A DNA stretch of 64,000 nucleotides from contig JAMWBK010000005.1 in assembly GCA_029953675.1 (NCBI GenBank), positions 1,302,001 through 1,366,000 of the forward strand, given 5' to 3'. The translations under genes and the position numbers were made by a program. Below, piece by piece: positions 625 through 7,978 of this stretch. Each line of letters starts with the position of its first letter. The first letter of the stretch is position 1. Source of the stretch: Rhodosorus marinus CCMP1338 (Eukaryota; Plantae; Rhodophyta). Below the pieces are notes generated by a model, which was not told the DNA's origin, searched no databases, and saw only the letters and a list, made by a program, of their open reading frames with translations.

Positions 625-3600
625 ATGAGCGATGTTGAAGAGCATACAGAAGAGGCTGAAGAAGTCGCTATCCAAGGTAGGGGGTTTTTAAGAGCAGGGG
701 CTCATCTAGGCCCAGGTGTTGATCGACGATTTGTTTCGAGTTTGTTGTCTTTGCTTCTTTTTTTTTTTGCTTTTGTTTGGTTTTTTTCTGGTTGTCTTAC
801 TGGGTGAGTGGGTCTCTTGATTCTGTCCTCCCGGGGGGGGTTCTGTAGGTTGCTGCGGACGGGAGTGTGGTTGAAGATGAATCGAAACCTGATGAGGCAG
901 AGGAATCTGCTGATGCAGTCCCGGCTGTGAGATCCTCATCCGTGGTTCCTTCCGCCGCGGTGGAGAGCACGAAGGGCGAGCGCACCAGACAAGGAGCAGA
1001 CGCGGCGGTGAGGACCTCAACAATATCCGGGGATGCGTTCGAAGTTTTTGACAGAGTGCGGGCGACAGGGTCACAACCACCGCCAGAGGATGCCGCTGTG
1101 AGATCTTCCTCGTTACATGCCTCAGCTCTGCAGGAGGAAGCAAGTACCACCTCTAAGGGACGTTTGAATAGAGAACTGTTTGTCAAGGTATGCAATACGG
1201 AAATCAGGAACGAACAGACTGGATACGATCCATGAAATCCCTCAACATTTACCATCTTGTAGGCTCGTGAGGATCATGCGTACGAGGAGAGTCCAGATAC
1301 AGTCGCTGCGAGATCAGGATCAGTTCTAATAGCCACTCAACAATCCATTGATCTTGAACTACCTACTTCCGATGACCAAGGCCAGCTACCGGATCTTGCG
1401 TATCGAGCAGAGTCGATCATGGGGAAGGGTGTGGAAAGCGCCGAACTGCATGCAGGGGCTCTCGAATATCGAAGCAACGAAGCAGCCAGTCCCTCTCAAC
1501 CCAGATCAGGTGGTTTGGGGAGCGAACACGCAGTACTCGACGACCGCGCAGGCAAAGCCAGTTCTGTCTTTCTGAGCGGGAGAGAAAGCATCACCTCTCA
1601 ACACGAGGATGCGCCATTGCACGAGGCGGCAGAGAAGACTGGCTCGATCTACCTCGGGGCCAGGGACAGCATGATTCCTGAACCAGCGGAGGCTGTGTCC
1701 ACTCGCGAAGCCGCGGACTCTGCTTCTAGAACAGCCTCCGTGTTCCTGAGCGCGAGAGAGAGCGTATTTAGGCCCTCTGAGGACGAGGATGTTTCTGCAG
1801 AGGTTGCTTCCGCTGCTAAAATGGATTCAGTCTACCTGAGCGCGAGGGAAAGCATGGTACTGGAGACGCCGCTCAATGCAGATGACGCTGCTGACGCTGC
1901 GAAGAAAACAGACTCTGTACACCAAGCTTCGTGGCAAAGCTTCGCACCTGGAGAAGCCACAGTGCTCGGTAAAGCCGGCGATACAGGCGATGCAGTTCCT
2001 GACCGTGCGCAGAAAGCAGGATCTGTGTTCCAAGGCTCTTATGAGAGCATGGCTCCGGGAGCTGCTACACAGACAGTCCAAGAAGATTTTCCCTCGGATC
2101 AGGCGCAGAAAACACCATCAGTCTACCTTGATTCCAGGGAGAGCTTTGCTCAAACCCCCGCAATGCAAGCTTCAGAGCTAGAATCAACTTCGACGGAGAA
2201 ACCTGGTGAGAAGGACAGCAAGGCCCCGAGCGGGAGAGCGGCTGCGGCTGCAGCCTTGGGCGCTGGTGCTGCAGTTGCTGCTGGAGCAGCAGTGGCCGCA
2301 GGAACTGCACAGAGAGCTCCGAAACCACCAGCTCCATCATTCAAGAATACCGAGAGTGATCTGCCGCCAAGGGCAACACCTCCGGTGGGACGAGTGCCTT
2401 CGAGCCGGCGAGCGATGCCGGCGATGGCCGCGAAGGGCTCGCAGGCTCCTTCTACGGATCCATCAGCATCCCAGAGGATGACGGAGGTGCCATCCGCACG
2501 TCCCGGGCTTGCCCCCTCGGCCTCCGCAGTACGAGACGATAAAGCGTTTCGAGCCCCATCTTTCATGGGAGGGTCTGGTAGCTATGTAAGCACTACTTGT
2601 GGAAAACAGAAGCGGCGAGTATTTAACCAAGGTGCTAATTTGTGTAAGCTGAAAACTTGCCTGCTTTTTCCAGACCTCCAACGCATCCTCCTTGCAAGTT
2701 AACCCAGCAGCAGCTGTTAAGGACACGTCGTTTATGGCCGGTGGGCTTAGCTCCGAGGTGTGGGACTCGTTTGACGCCGTTTCCTTGCCCAATTGCCTCA
2801 ACAGACCATGTATTCTTCGGCTTTGTTCCTAGGTAATCGGATCGGGTGTCCAGAAACGCGAAATGCCCCGGAATGTGACCACAGAATCTGACATTTTCGT
2901 AAGCGCATGCACGAGCTCCTTCACGTTGTTTTCCGGACAGTCCATGGATCGCTAATTGGAGCGCTAATTTTTGCGTTTCGTTACTGTCAGGGAGAGGGCG
3001 ATTCTAAGATGGTGCAGCGCGTCACAACGGAGCCTCTTGTAGCGGAGGTAGATTTCCTCCTCCTCTGGACTACCACGTAGCCTTGATAGTTCACCCTTTG
3101 CTGATGATCTGCTGCTATTTCTCTACCGATGAATCCAAGGATGACAAGCAGAGAGCTCTAGACTCATCCCTTGTCGCACAAGCTTTTGCAGCCGCGCCGC
3201 TGTTCTCGTCGGAAAGAAAATCCAAGGCTCAGATTACCGTCTTGATCTGTAAGTTGAATCTCGTCTGCAGTGAATTCTGCATCCATGCCGTACAAAGATG
3301 GGACGTTCTGATAATTGTGCTTGCTCGCTCGACTCAGATTCAATGTATGGTCATGTCAAGATCATGGCTGACGCAATGTTGGAAGGACTGAGGTCGGTAC
3401 CAGGCGTAGACGTCAGTGTATACCAGGTTGCTGAGACGCTGGATGATGAGGTGCTTAAGAAGCTTCCCGCGAAAGCGACGTCCGAATTTCAGACACTAAC
3501 GGTCGCCGATGTTGAGATCTTGACGAAGGCAGACGGGATAGTGTTGGGTGTTCCCACCAGATTCGGGGCAATGCCCACACAGATGAAGGTTTGTCGAAAG

Positions 3601-3996
3601 ATTCTATCATGTATGAGGCCGAAGAACCTCAACTGATCATTTGGAGCTATCGGACCGCAGGCTATCCTCGACTCGTGCTACTTTTTATGGAGGGAGAATG
3701 GTCTCCTCGGTAAGCTTGCCACCGTTTTCATGTGCTCGGCCTCGATGCAAGGTGGTCAAGAAACGACTATGCTCTCTACCATTCATGAACTCGCACACTA
3801 CGGAATGCTGTATTTCCCAATTGGGATAAGACCGGAGATGATCCACGCCAAGGAGCCACTAGGGGGTACCTGCTACGGAGCGGGGTCCTTCACAGCGGCA
3901 AATGGAACACGCCTACCGTCGGAAACTGAGAAGCAGCTGGCTCGATACCAAGGAAACGCATTCGCTACGAAAGTTAGAGAGTTCGTCTGCACCTAA
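625..3996 (+). CDS. Multi-exon protein: long acidic, repeat-rich N-terminal region spliced to a C-terminal WrbA-type flavodoxin-like NAD(P)H:quinone oxidoreductase domain
   Basis: WrbA motifs QITVLIYSMYGH (across intron 3249-3337), ADGIVLGVPTRFGAMPTQMK, GKLATVF..S..QGGQETT, GGTCYGAG. Phase-0 GT-AG introns link the upstream ORFs in frame: 1188-1262, 2586-2672, 2758-2831, 2898-2990, 3048-3139; also 3589-3660. The start at 625 is uncertain. The WrbA domain alone (3140-3996) is high confidence. Confidence 0.65.
1530..2140 (+). repeat. About seven in-frame peptide repeats, consensus [KR]-x-x-S-V-[YF]-L-x-x-R-E-S, spaced about 28-32 aa
   Basis: KASSVFLSGRES, KTGSIYLGARDS, RTASVFLSARES, KMDSVYLSARES, KTDSVHQASWQS, KAGSVFQGSYES and KTPSVYLDSRES in ORF 1419..2702. 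Confidence 0.85.
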
Positions 3997-4027: not shown

Positions 4028-4312
4028 TCATACACAGTAACTAGAACGATTCGGAGAAAGACTGTCACCTCCTTTCGTGAGCTCCGCGGCTTCCTGATAG
4101 ACCTTTTTCGAGAGGCTCAATTTGAGATTGTGTCGATCGCATAGGCTAAGCAGTAGCTCCTTCAGTCCATAGTCCCAATCTTCACGGAGTGGACTCGACG
4201 AAGAATGGGCTGAGCCTTGGCCAGTTAACATAGTGGATTTGGATGTGCCAGGTCGGCTGACATTTGTGCTTTCAATTCGAGGCCTGCTCGGCAGTTGAAT
4301 CTGCTCGGACAT
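4028..4312 (-). CDS. Probable last exon of a hypothetical protein, convergent with the WrbA gene
   Basis: 94-aa ORF with a protein-like helical segment (DWDYGLKELLLSLCDRHNL). No family recognised and upstream exons not resolved. Confidence 0.3.
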   Translation of the reverse strand: MSEQIQLPSRPRIESTNVSRPGTSKSTMLTGQGSAHSSSSPLREDWDYGLKELLLSLCDRHNLKLSLSKKVYQEAAELTKGGDSLSPNRSSYCV

Positions 4313-4764
4313 GTGGAATAAACATATTTTGGTGTACTTATCTCGCAGATAGACTCAGGCGTACAGCCCTGTTAACAGGGCCGTCTCAGAAAATGAGCAT
4401 TGAGCGAGTTGCTGGCATCTTCATTGATCGTTTCCTCTGGTAGTGTTGCTAAACTGCACTGCTAGACATGTCTCATCGACTTTGAATCTGAGAGATGTCG
4501 TCAGTTGAAAGCACGCGCTTTCTTTTGCAGTACAGGACGCTCCAGAATCCTCGGAATGTGAACTTTGCACTTGACAGGAGAACTTGGATGGACGTTTTGA
4601 TGGAGGATGTGAGCAAGTTCACTCACAGCTTGACTTTGGGAGCCCGGCTGCTTTGACAAGGGGTTCGCCTATTTGCTTTCGATCCCCCGAGTTTTGGTTG
4701 CTTTTTGCAAGTCCTGAAAATATCGATCGAATCGTTTTCGGTTTGTCCGTTTGGAAGCGAATCG

Positions 4765-6551
4765 ATGCCGGAGCTTCCTGAAGTTGAGCACGCGCGAAGG
4801 CTGCTGCAGCGGCACTTGGTGGGTAAGCTCGTTCGATCGATGACGGTGGATGTGGCCGATGATAAGGTCTTCGAGGAATGTTCCAAGACGTTCGAGAAGA
4901 TGATACTAGGAAAACGGTTCATGTCTGCGCACAGAAAAGGCAAGCTGCTTTGGCTTGAAACCGATCGGGCACCTCATGCGATCTTCCATTTAGGCATGAC
5001 AGGTGCTTTCTTCATCCGGGGTGAGGAACGTATCCGATACGTTGACACTCGAGGAGGTCATGAAAGCACTTGGCCGCCTCGATTTACGAAACTAAGGCTT
5101 CAGATGGACGACGGTACTGAGGCCGCATACACAGATCCGAGACGATTTGGGCGGATCCGGCTCTCCGATGATCCGAGAAAGTTCATATCGGACTCGAAGC
5201 TTGGATTTGATGCCCTGAACGAGCTTCCTGACGAGGCCGCCTTCCTAGAGGAGTTGCAGAGGAGGAAGCGATCCGTATCGAAGGCTCTTTTACTCGATCA
5301 GAGCTTTGCTGCTGGAATTGGCAATTGGGTAGCTGATGAGGTGAGAGCGAGAGGCCGATGCATCTCCATAACACTTGGCCATGGTTTTAACCAGATAACG
5401 TACACAGGTTCTGTTTCAGGCTAGGATTCATCCCCAGAGGCTCGTCGGTTCTCTTTCAGAATCCGAGAAGCGTCAGCTGAGGTTGTCCATTCATAGCGTC
5501 GTATCAAGTGCTGTGAACGTTGACGCGGATTCGGATAAGTACCCAAGGTCTTGGCTTTTCCACTACCGCTGGAGCAAGTCAAAGAGTGGAAGAGTCGTAA
5601 ACGACGAAGGATTGGAGATCAGGTTCGAGACCGTGGGCGGAAGAACCTCGGCGTTTGCTCCAAAGGTTCAGAAGCTTCGTTTTGGTTCCGAAGGTGCTGC
5701 TTCTGGCACCGTTTCAAAGGGGAGGGAGGTGATAGCGAAGAAGAAAATGAAGAAGACGAAGAAGAACGTAGATATCGTGGAGGAGGCAGAAGAGGAGGGA
5801 GAAGGGGAGGAGGTTGGTAGAATTAGTCCAGTTGGAAATATGAGGAGACGAAGCAGGAGGCTCGCTGCTCTTCAGGAGCATGAGGATGAGGAGGTGAAGG
5901 AAGGCCCACGTGGTGATGAGGTGAAGGTATGTGTCAAGGATGAGGAATCCTCAAAAGAAGCGGGGTTGGCTGGTTCTGACTTGGAAGAGGTTGGGACAGG
6001 TGCGAGCGAAGAGGGTGATGCGAAAGAAGAGGCCGACGTAGGGGCGAGCGGAAAATCTGCGAAAGAATCTGAAGACGATGATGATGATGAAAATTTAACA
6101 ATGATTGGAGCCCTTGCGGTTCAGAGAATGGAATCGAGAGGCGAGAATGCGGATGGCTCTTCTCGGCGACAATCAGTGACGGGTAGAGTGGAAGCAAGGA
6201 GAAAACGGAAACGCGCACCAAAGGTATTCAACAGAAAAATGGATGTAAGAAAAGCGTAAATGCCTCTGAGTCGGATGTCCTAACTTTTGTGCTGCTTTTC
6301 ATGGTTTCTTCTCGTCCAAGGCGGGAACAGATGACTGGAAGGTAGAGGTAGACCTGTTGTTTGAGCTACTTGGCGGGAGCGAGGAGGCGAAAGTGCTCAC
6401 TGTCGATAACCTTGTAGAGGCCGCCGCAAACGCCGGGGAGAGTCTAACTTCAATCCAAGCCCAGGATATGATCACGTTGTTCGATCGAACTGGCACAGGG
6501 ACCCTCACCAGACAGGATTTTGACGAAGTGGTGCTGAAGACGGGTCTTTGA
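4765..6551 (+). CDS. mutM: Formamidopyrimidine-DNA glycosylase (Fpg/MutM, zincless plant/fungal type) with an acidic linker and a spliced C-terminal centrin-like EF-hand lobe
   Basis: Starts MPELPEVE; RKGKLLW, HLGMTG, DPRRFG and the H2TH motif LLDQSFAAGIGNWVADE|VLFQARIHP (intron 5341-5407). A second intron, 6245-6320 (GTAAGA donor, CTAAC at 6280, AAG acceptor), joins in phase 0 to the exon ending DMITLFDRTGTGTLTRQDFDEVVLKTGL*. Confidence 0.88.
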
Positions 6552-6955
6552 AAGGCACGATCCGAAGTATCTCAACTTTCGTCAAATGCCAATCCTCCAC
6601 GGACTTGGGGGGCGCGTTCTACAGGCGCAACCGCCAGGGAGAATCTAACCTCGATCCAAACCCAGGATATGGTTACGGTATTCGATCGAACTGGCGCAAG
6701 GACCCTCTCGAGACAGGATTTCGACGAAGTGGTGCTGAAGACGGGTCTTTGAGAAGCGCGATCCGAAGTATCTCAACTTCCGTCAAATGCCAATCCTCCA
6801 CAGACTTGGGGGTGGGGTGGGGTTTCGATCGAACTGGCTCAGGGACCCTCACAAGACAGGATTTCCACGAAGTGGTGCTGAAGACCGGTCTTTGAAAAGC
6901 GCGATCCGAAGTATCGCAACTTCCGTCAAATGCCCTCCCTCCATGGGGACTTGCT
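6425..6955 (+). repeat. Tandem triplication of the last EF-hand coding segment plus stop codon and 3' UTR
   Basis: The unit tcgatcgaactgg...gaagtggtgctgaagac(g/c)ggtctttga...gatccgaagtatc...cgtcaaatgcc starts at 6481, 6682 and 6825 (periods 201 and about 143 bp). Confidence 0.95.
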
Positions 6956-7978
6956 GGGGCGTTCTGACTCTGACTCCGCTTCCGCCACCCAAGCACACCC
7001 GATTCCCACTTGCCTTCCGACATCCCCCAATCACGCTTTCCAAACGTCGTTAAATGAAACTTACTAAATAATTAAAATTTTCACAATTTTTCTATCCAAT
7101 CAAACGAAGAGAATCCCACTGCAGACCAGATAACGTTCTATTTACTTCCATATTTCACCTTCACACATTCATCAATAAAATCGAATGTTTTAAATCACAC
7201 TCGGGCAATCCGCACGAAATTTTGCGCCATTCTAACCCTGTCCCATCCCATCCGCCACCGCGAAAAAATCTCTTCTAAAAAATATCTCATATATTCAATC
7301 AATCATTAAATATACGCCAATAAAAACGATATAATCGTAATATTTGAGTAAAAAACATAAAATAAAATTAGTCTACCGTTCTCGGAGGTCAACCCTCTTG
7401 GATATTTTATCCAAAAAACATACACCGACTGGATATCCCATTAGTCCGAAAGAAGAGCATTATTTACCCCCCTGATGGGAATTGGAAAGGTTTGATTCAA
7501 ATGTTGTATTTAATAATAATTAATTGACAGTTGCAATGTAAATGATATTGTAGGTAAGGGGCCAGATTAATTTTGAGTTTACTTATCTTTTTGTTTAGAT
7601 AAGTCGTGCGGATTGGAAGGATAGTTTTACGTCAGTGTGTTGGACAGCTGATTCTTTGGCTCGGGGAAGGAAGGGAAAGGGAGGGAGTTTTAATTAGAAA
7701 CGGCGATGAGTTGGGAGAGATAGAGAAAGAGGTGTTGGGGTTTGGAGGGGAGAGGGGAGGGAGAGTGATGATGGTTATATAGGCACTATAGATAGTCTGG
7801 ATGAGGGATAAGGAGGAGATGAGGAGAGGAGGAGATGAGGAGGTGACGAGAGGTGAGGAGGTGTTGGGTTTAGTAGTGTTGGTGTTAGGGGTTGTGAGGT
7901 TTCCTTTGGTTGTTGGTTCGTGGTGTGGTGCTCGTTTGTTGTTCCTTTCGAGGTGGAAAGGGGGAAGTTATTGTTAGA

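Follow-up and report, generated by a model that had tools for sequence, protein, structure and literature searches.

Our analysis of a 64,000-nucleotide (nt) stretch of the genome of the red alga Rhodosorus marinus strain CCMP1338, here referred to as the window, revealed that the nuclear gene NDN08_001353 (assembly GCA_029953675.1, contig JAMWBK010000005.1) joins a DNA glycosylase of the formamidopyrimidine glycosylase (Fpg) family to a C-terminal EF-hand lobe with the sequence affinities of a centrin. The gene spans 1787 nt and is identical base for base with window positions 4765-6551. A single gene and a single mRNA carry both the Fpg part and the EF-hand lobe. Taken together, the data probably describe a single gene that encodes a plant-type Fpg, a linker of about 180 amino acids (aa) and a centrin-derived lobe, in which splicing sets the C terminus of the product and the lobe would serve for Ca2+-independent docking. 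A first-pass annotation of the window had proposed the fusion itself, and this was borne out, as the sister-strain contig L003 encodes the full open reading frame (ORF; protein P0122) and the lobe is under constraint.

Transcripts join the Fpg core to the EF-hand exon

The window was compared with JGI-hosted transcriptome contigs from MMETSP that represent relatives 84-88% identical in protein, giving three lineages: that of the window, that of contigs L001 and L003, and that of contig L002. Contig L001 (2461 nt, source of the 473-aa protein P0002) has intron 1 spliced and the terminal intron retained, and its ORF stops inside the latter; this polyadenylated transcript continues downstream into the EF-hand exon and has an A-rich tail at its end. 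Contig L003 equals L001 minus exactly the homologous terminal intron of 100 nt (GTATTC...CGTAG), and both contigs run continuously from the 5′-untranslated region (UTR) through Fpg and the EF-hand exon to the same 3′ end. In the third lineage, L002 (1687 nt, source of the 375-aa protein P0003) has the terminal intron spliced at the junction ...CGCGCTCCAAAG/GCAGGAACAGAC, corresponding to donor 6224 and acceptor 6320. This junction, ...RKRKRAPK/AGTDDW, is common to L002, L003 and the GenBank model P0001. Because L001 and L003 carry Fpg together with the EF-hand exon and P0122 encodes the fusion, the EF-hand exon lies on no separate transcript; the stop at 6257-6259, which the first-pass annotation had named as a possible true end of the Fpg mRNA, is used by the retained-intron isoform.

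The coding start at 4765, the 67-nt intron at 5341-5407 and the frame that stays open through an acidic/basic linker to 6257-6259 are present in the sequence as first described. For the terminal intron the earlier description stood in part: the GTAAGA at 6245, the CTAAC at 6280 and the AAG acceptor ending at 6320 exist and the exon joins in frame, but the donor lies at 6224 and the intron measures 97 nt, not 76. Donor 6245 was ruled out as the main site, as L002, L003 and the RNA-seq-guided GenBank model all use 6224 and the GTAAGA is missing in L001. It may still serve as a minor site in CCMP1338; both donors are in frame, and their products differ by 7 residues (VFNRKMD). The corrected coding model (4765-5340 + 5408-6223 + 6321-6551) specifies 540 aa, and the features of the gene are as follows.

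4289..4764, + strand: 5′UTR, minimum extent (sister-strain transcripts L001 and L003 align from 4289 on)
4765..5340, + strand: coding exon 1, Fpg N-terminal domain with Pro2/Glu3 in MPELPEVE, and start of the H2TH domain (Pfam; alignment to AtFPG1, 3TWL)
5341..5407, + strand: intron 1, 67 nt, GTGAGA...ACAG (missing from all three transcript contigs)
5408..6223, + strand: coding exon 2, remainder of H2TH and zincless finger (up to about 5620), followed by a disordered acidic/basic linker of about 180 aa (Pfam H2TH; AlphaFold2 [AF2])
5834..5875, + strand: conserved basic motif GNMRRRSRRLAALQ in the variable linker (near-invariant in nucleotides and protein in all three lineages)
5927..5999, + strand: exitron, that is, an alternatively spliced intron within the coding exon, 73 nt, GTATGT...CTGAC...ACAG (codes for linker if retained, shifts the frame if spliced)
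6089..6142, + strand: conserved predicted helix ENLTMIGALAVQRMESRG (within 6086-6223, where the ratio of nonsynonymous to synonymous substitution rates [dN/dS] is 0.03-0.47 in this frame; stops in the other frames)
6197..6223, + strand: basic cluster RRKRKRAPK (conserved in three lineages)
6224..6320, + strand: terminal intron, 97 nt, AAG/GTATTC...CTAAC...CCAAG/G (spliced in L002, L003 and the GenBank model, retained in L001)
6321..6551, + strand: last coding exon, centrin-like EF-hand pair, 76 aa plus stop (phmmer, dN/dS, AF2)
6372..6410, + strand: loop 1, degenerate, GGSEEAKVLTVDN (ligand residues missing, one residue extra)
6483..6518, + strand: loop 2, non-canonical, DRTGTGTLTRQD (Thr at 3 and 5, Asp at 12)
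6552..7195, + strand: 3′UTR with AATAAA at 7174-7179 (alignments of the L001 and L003 3′ ends reach about 7195)

The exon 1 boundary was confirmed in L001, L002 and L003, and the frame of exon 2, entered at 5408, meets its first stop at 6257-6259. The last exon encodes AGTDDWKVEVDLLFELLGGSEEAKVLTVDNLVEAAANAGESLTSIQAQDMITLFDRTGTGTLTRQDFDEVVLKTGL, terminating in ...DRTGTGTLTRQDFDEVVLKTGL directly before the stop codon. The 5′UTR, at least 476 nt by alignment to the sister transcripts, is unusually long and about 58% conserved, and a 64-aa upstream ORF was called on L001 and L003.

The joined frame is under purifying selection

We calculated dN/dS by the Nei-Gojobori method across the three lineages, with binomial p values against neutrality. 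Read in the joined frame, the EF-hand exon gave dN/dS values of 0.057, 0.129 and 0.096 (dS of 0.47-0.66; p = 3e-10, 2.5e-6 and 7e-9), and the other two frames gave values above 1 and contained 4-7 stops. The Fpg core yielded 0.14-0.16, and by this measure the constraint on the lobe equals that on the core. These ratios indicate that the lobe is translated and under strong purifying selection. All four helices and loop 2 were invariant, with 5 synonymous and 0 nonsynonymous changes in loop 2 relative to L001; the variable residues of the exon cluster in degenerate loop 1, the most variable part, and in the linker between the two hands.

Constraint was uneven along the linker, with dN/dS of 0.45-0.75 in its first part, and the indels between strains were all multiples of 3. 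Since the exitron is conserved and open, the indels come in threes and dN/dS is low, ribosomes appear to read the long frame that starts in Fpg, crosses the exitron and continues in the EF-hand exon.

Several linker motifs stand out by their conservation. The near-invariant GNMRRRSRRLAALQ may act as a nuclear localisation signal, as a site for a basophilic kinase or as an amphipathic helix that serves as a ligand, and the cluster RRKRKRAPK is a probable nuclear localisation signal that also resembles the basic N-terminal extension of centrins, to whose N terminus it aligns weakly. As a separate observation, two RRxS motifs are conserved within the fast-evolving linker, RRRSRR (5834-5875) and SSRRQSV (6143-6196), and both look like basophilic phosphorylation sites of the CaMK/PKA type.

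The 3′ part of the gene holds a further peculiarity, a tandem triplication at 6425-6955. Its unit runs from the half of the last exon that codes for the second EF-hand across the stop codon into some 60 nt of 3′UTR.

6425-6611, + strand: copy 1, functional
6626-6812, + strand: copy 2, 89% identical (sequence comparison)
6769-6955, + strand: copy 3, 67% identical (sequence comparison)

Copies 2 and 3, located past the stop codon, are in decay (in copy 2, loop 2 has become DRTGARTLSRQD, with Gly6 changed to Arg), and both are missing from the sister-strain transcripts L001 and L003. We considered them as alternative terminal exons and rejected this; an acceptor-like CTACAG precedes copy 2, but a join from the matching GT of copy 1 would be in the wrong frame.

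An exitron and the terminal intron set the C terminus

Although the exons and the lobe had been recognized in the first-pass annotation, the exitron at 5927-5999 had been overlooked, as had the triplication. The exitron is spliced in L002 and in Transcript_40924 and retained with an open frame in L001 and L003. Its splicing shifts the frame into a basic tail of 13 residues, VRAKRVMRKKRPT in the window and VRAKRAMRKKKST and VPPKRVKRTKRPT in the relatives, each followed by a stop; this frame-shift stop (6035-6037) is conserved in all three lineages. Compared with L001, the exitron is 88% identical and free of indels and stops, whereas the terminal intron reaches 56% identity (Fisher p = 5.6e-6) and the 5′UTR 58%. 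The cluster of P0002 contains four MMETSP isoforms that belong to the same gene.

Transcript_40926, 473 aa: terminal intron retained
Transcript_40928, 538 aa (P0122): full Fpg-linker-EF fusion
Transcript_40924, 377-aa short form (P0124) plus 117-aa downstream ORF (P0125): exitron spliced
Transcript_40927: 290-aa fragment

For the window, the same choices specify at least three C-terminal forms: an isoform of 378 aa when the exitron is spliced, one of 475 aa ending at 6257-6259 when the exitron and the terminal intron are both retained, and the fusion of 540 aa, which arises exclusively from retention of the exitron together with splicing of the terminal intron. In the exitron-spliced form, the last exon junction follows the stop at a distance of 186 nt, and because of this distance the 378-aa isoform may be sensitive to nonsense-mediated decay. 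A protein profile search and a search with a conserved 22-mer found no further isoform contigs or relatives in metagenome contigs.

The catalytic core is of the plant type

The protein starts with MPELPEVE, of which M1-E8 are near-invariant in a 45-sequence alignment, as are R271 and GGRT. Pfam recognized the domains Fapy_DNA_glyco (PF01149, 112.7 bits against a cut-off of 25.5) and H2TH (PF06831, 71.9 against 34.7), while Fpg-like_C remained below threshold (17.0 bits against 27.1). An alignment with Arabidopsis FPG1 (3TWL; residues 1-294 versus 1-289, E = 4.7e-70) covers the whole length of the core. There is no Cys in residues 241-285, so no Cys4 zinc finger, and no large insertion interrupts the core. 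By these features the core is a plant-type (plant/fungal) zincless-finger Fpg with predicted glycosylase/apurinic-apyrimidinic lyase activity. In Fpg/Nei enzymes the N-terminal proline is the catalytic nucleophile, and any appendage must therefore sit at the C terminus.

Enzymes of the AtFPG1 class excise formamidopyrimidine (Fapy) and hydantoin lesions well and 8-oxoguanine (8-oxoG) poorly, owing to a short capping loop (PMC10573277). The substrates of the R. marinus enzyme would then be Fapy, guanidinohydantoin and spiroiminodihydantoin, with weak activity on 8-oxoG. The first-pass annotation had linked the gene to 8-oxoG repair; the Fpg family assignment behind this label holds, but the label itself is probably inexact because the core falls into the plant-type class that acts poorly on 8-oxoG.

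The lobe ranks closest to centrins

When the 76-aa tail was searched against PDB with phmmer, centrin-2 was matched end to end (tail residues 5-76 versus 101-171 of 172, E = 4.4e-8). With a longer query of 128 aa, the ten best matches were all centrins (E of 5e-9 to 5e-5; best score, 39.8 bits), and the best calmodulin reached 26.3 bits; BLASTP against a canonical centrin (P0144) gave 35% identity over 77 residues (E = 3e-9). By sequence ranking the lobe is centrin-derived, in agreement with the resemblance to centrin C-lobes that had been noted at first. As tail homologues were too few, the phylogenetic placement of the lobe was limited to this ranking against PDB sequences.

Several features set the lobe apart from a complete centrin. 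It comprises a single EF-hand pair and a disordered linker upstream, as opposed to the four EF-hands in two lobes of a centrin, and the loops GGSEEAKVLTVDN and DRTGTGTLTRQD do not hold the canonical Ca2+ ligands of the centrin C-lobe. The earlier description of loop 1 as degenerate and of loop 2 as carrying Asp at position 12 was correct. Loop 2 keeps Asp1, Gly6, a hydrophobic residue at 8 and an acidic one at 12.

The AF2 model of the full 540 aa (45-sequence alignment) showed a core at residues 1-285 with a predicted local distance difference test (pLDDT) score mostly above 90, a linker at about 286-468 below 50, and a four-helix lobe at 469-538 of about 52-77. Modelling of the last 128 aa from three sequences gave a mean pLDDT of 52 and a predicted twofold helix-loop-helix arrangement with short beta bridges, with helices at 57-68, 80-89, 96-106 and 116-126, and strands at 76-77 and 113-114. 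This shorter model has an extra helix over ENLTMIGALAVQRMESR, of low confidence, and the helix at 6089-6142 is missing from the full-length model. Foldseek matched the 128-aa model in PDB to calmodulin and centrin lobes exclusively (probability of about 1, E of about 0.02), and centrin and calmodulin were not separable by this comparison.

The parent lobe is ambiguous. A C-lobe is suggested by the best overall match and by the C-terminal ...KT(S/G)L. On the other side, loop 2 with its flanks (DRTGTGTLTRQDF) shares 10 of 18 residues with the EF2 loop of centrin (DKEGTGKITYQDF), the Asp at 12 included, and RRKRKRAPKAGTDDWKVEV resembles the N-terminal QRKRMSPKPELTEDQKQEI of centrin, its inclusion raising the N-lobe alignment from 8.0 to 14.7 bits. 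We also considered the helix ENLTMIGALAVQRM as a homologue of the centrin inter-lobe helix (FLTVMTQKM) and dropped the idea, as HMMER gave no alignment there.

The combination was found in Rhodosorus alone

The first-pass annotation knew of no such architecture, and we likewise found no precedent. Among the best 120 Fpg homologues none had an EF-hand Pfam domain, and a search of a literature library for the combination of formamidopyrimidine glycosylase, EF-hand and centrin yielded no description. A search of 5.8 billion proteins recovered no relative of the tail outside Rhodosorus, the sole hit being the sister ORF P0121; against a set of 1.84 billion representatives the tail matched P0121, proteins with multiple EF-hand repeats and, weakly, centrins. 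In the databases searched, close relatives of the tail were confined to Rhodosorus, and the fusion was found in this genus alone.

Among characterized systems, the Arabidopsis enzyme AtFPG1/AtMMH (PDB 3TWK, 3TWL and 3TWM) is similar in its PELPEVE start, its H2TH domain, its zincless finger without Cys4 and the lack of a long capping-loop insertion. Alternative splicing of the Arabidopsis FPG gene likewise produces several isoforms, which have the catalytic residues in common but not the C terminus (PMC10573277). AtFPG1, however, has no EF-hand, whereas the C termini of the R. marinus protein are set by the exitron and the retained terminal intron, one of them bearing a centrin-like lobe of predicted fold. 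Alternative C termini of plant Fpg are thus already known, and the combination of Fpg with an EF-hand lobe is the new part. A likeness exists also to the exitron of MBD4L, which, as cited in PMC10573277, is an alternatively spliced intron inside a glycosylase coding exon that alters the non-catalytic part of the protein. The MBD4L exitron excises an N-terminal segment in frame, while the 73 nt of the R. marinus exitron are not a multiple of 3, so that its splicing truncates the protein and uncouples the C-terminal lobe.

The closest counterparts of the lobe are the C-lobes of centrin-2 and Cdc31 as seen in complexes with XPC, Sfi1 and Sac3 (for example PDB 2GGM, 2OBH, 2GV5 and 3FWB). By sequence they match the tail best, and they have in common with it the C-terminal ...KT(S/G)L and the predicted four-helix EF-hand pair; in the alignment, residues at hydrophobic core and cleft positions are of like character. 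The R. marinus tail differs in being one lobe fused to an enzyme, in an identity of at most 35%, in its non-canonical loops and in lacking a terminal aromatic residue.

The H2TH glycosylases NEIL3 and NEIL1 likewise keep the N-terminal catalytic residue free and carry added regulatory or interaction modules at the C terminus. NEIL3 bears zinc fingers of the RanBP and GRF types, of which the latter are able to autoinhibit the enzyme (PMC9266487). The place and time of action of a DNA glycosylase depend on such non-catalytic parts, and the known set includes zinc fingers, disordered tails, Fe-S clusters and NUDIX domains (PMC9266487). The text of this 2022 review of non-catalytic glycosylase domains mentions neither EF-hand nor centrin nor calmodulin; the EF-hand pair of R. 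marinus thus differs from NEIL3 and NEIL1 in being a module that the review text mentions for no DNA glycosylase (PMC9266487). With a conserved lobe derived from a centrin, Fpg would add a new kind to these appendages. The gene would also offer a case of domain capture by a C-terminal exon, of an exitron that toggles a predicted folded domain on and off, and of an EF-hand lobe kept under selection after the loss of its canonical Ca2+ sites.

Proposed function of the splice forms and alternative explanations

Under the reading that we consider probable, removal of the exitron would yield the 378-aa enzyme with a short basic tail, and retention of both the exitron and the terminal intron would give the 475-aa enzyme with the full linker and the predicted nuclear localisation signal. 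When the exitron is kept and the terminal intron spliced, the disordered linker of the 540-aa protein would tether the glycosylase to the EF-hand pair, and splicing would set the proportions of tethered, untethered and short Fpg. The C-lobes of centrins clamp hydrophobic helices of XPC/Rad4, Sfi1 and Sac3, the W/L/L target helices. The R. marinus lobe, whose canonical Ca2+ sites appear to be lost, would by analogy form a clamp for a helical peptide that is Ca2+-independent or at most weakly modulated by Mg2+/Ca2+; constitutive docking is favoured over a Ca2+ switch because both loops are non-canonical. Its target could be a helix of a nuclear partner protein, such as the one by which Rad4/XPC, Sfi1 or Sac3 binds centrin, or else a conserved motif of its own linker, GNMRRRSRRLAALQ or LTMIGALAVQRM, the latter within the full conserved stretch ENLTMIGALAVQRMESRG.

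Several points weigh against this interpretation. The fusion isoform is a Trinity path, and with the exitron and terminal-intron choices lying 224 nt apart, their co-occurrence on a single molecule is unproven. The sole contig recovered from the L002 lineage has the exitron spliced and hence the EF-hand lobe out of frame with Fpg. The isoforms are known from assembled transcripts of sister strains, which do not give the dominant isoform in CCMP1338. All Pfam EF-hand models, those of the EF-hand pair (PF13499/PF13833) included, fell below their cut-offs on the tail alone (EF-hand_8, 22.8 versus 28 bits; EF-hand_7, 17.5 versus 30; EF-hand_1, 17.7 versus 25.4), and the AF2 confidence for the lobe is just moderate. 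The docking role is drawn by analogy with centrin C-lobes, and loop 2, odd as it is, could still bind a metal in view of how strictly it is conserved.

An alternative is that the lobe acts mainly as a separate 117-aa 'mini-centrin' (MIGALAV...LKTGL) made from the downstream ORF of exitron-spliced transcripts or from an internal promoter, with Fpg ending earlier and the fusion being minor or unproductive. The Met codon at 6101-6103, within the ENLTMIGALAVQRMESRG region, indeed begins an ORF of 117 aa; all three lineages conserve it, and ORF callers predicted it on exitron-spliced transcripts of two of them (P0121 and P0125). Nucleotide identity climbs toward this ORF, from 74% in the upstream linker to 93% at 6086-6223, and the basic stretch before the lobe, with its likeness to the N-terminal extension of centrins, would fit a former centrin-like gene captured by read-through. 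However, this ATG lies behind a 378-codon ORF and many upstream ATGs, which makes leaky scanning or reinitiation very unlikely in a eukaryote; moreover, no short transcript with an internal start was recovered, and the 117-aa ORF was recorded exclusively on full-length Fpg transcripts. The exitron and the linker from the stop at 6037 to the Met are also open, differ by indels of 0 or multiples of 3 and are far more conserved than a true intron, as would be expected only if the long frame is read. We regard this alternative as unlikely. As a lead only, the 117-aa ORF may be a collapsed single-lobe centrin paralogue that the upstream Fpg gene captured.

The first-pass annotation had further suggested that the fusion could couple repair to Ca2+/Mg2+ sensing, and the lobe might be a genuine sensor that switches the activity or localisation of the glycosylase. 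The invariance of DRTGTGTLTRQD across lineages despite its synonymous changes would suit this, as would the Asp1, Gly6, hydrophobic residue 8 and acidic residue 12 that loop 2 retains and the Asp at 12 that it shares with the centrin EF2 loop; in EF-hands an Asp at this position favours smaller ions. Yet loop 1 lacks every ligand residue, has one residue in excess and evolves freely, and loop 2 has Thr instead of Asp/Asn/Ser at 3 and 5 and is left with two carboxylates, from which the canonical rule predicts low affinity. Every EF-hand Pfam model also stayed below its cut-off. Ca2+/Mg2+ sensing is doubtful, and we hold such a switch to be rather improbable.

A more far-reaching version of the docking model takes up the other partner proposed at first, the nucleotide excision repair (NER) machinery, although coupling to XPC and NER is pure analogy. 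The half-centrin on Fpg could occupy the centrin-binding helix of Rad4/XPC, Sfi1 or Sac3/TREX-2 and thereby recruit Fpg to the NER sensor or to nuclear-pore and transcription sites, with the exitron as the switch. This scenario appears quite improbable; if true, it would be a direct structural link between base excision repair and NER that arose in a lineage without centrioles. More generally, a lobe that binds centrin targets would be a natural experiment tying base excision repair to the centrin/XPC axis.

Finally, it is very improbable that the EF-hand exon is a dead centrin fragment in the 3′UTR and the fused ORF an artefact of prediction or assembly, even though two decaying duplicates do sit in the 3′UTR of the window and the retained-intron isoform stops at 6257-6259, since the joined frame shows dN/dS of 0.06-0.13 with p down to 3e-10 in three lineages, the same GT-AG junction occurs in two lineages and in the RNA-seq-guided model, the real duplicates past the stop have decayed, and the spliced introns of the sister contigs exclude contamination by genomic DNA.

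Public annotation and neighbouring genes

The best match of the predicted protein was P0001, 'hypothetical protein NDN08_001353 [Rhodosorus marinus]' (536 aa, 98% identity, 100% coverage). The public GenBank model thus already links the Fpg part to the EF-hand tail, its label being just 'hypothetical protein'; the CCMP1338 genome was annotated by BRAKER 2.1.5 with RNA-seq hints (PMC10250338). In this model (KAJ8904839.1) the acceptor of intron 1 is placed at 5419 and not at 5407, by which VLFQ of the conserved H2TH motif ADEVL(F/Y)QARIHP is lost. As transcripts of both sister lineages use acceptor 5407, the placement looks like a small annotation error.

The neighbouring genes all lie on the + strand and encode an RAI1-like protein, an 869-aa protein without Pfam matches, the Fpg described here, an alpha/beta hydrolase and an ABA4-like protein. 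A tblastn search detected no second centrin-like gene in the 64-kb window. The annotated gene for the 869-aa protein, directly upstream (window 632-3996; L004 1868-5232), comprises a Ser/Ala-rich ORF at 1419-2702 and, as judged by eye, a flavodoxin/WrbA-like segment at 3298-3996 (...GIVLGVPTRFG...), and this gene model may be over-merged.

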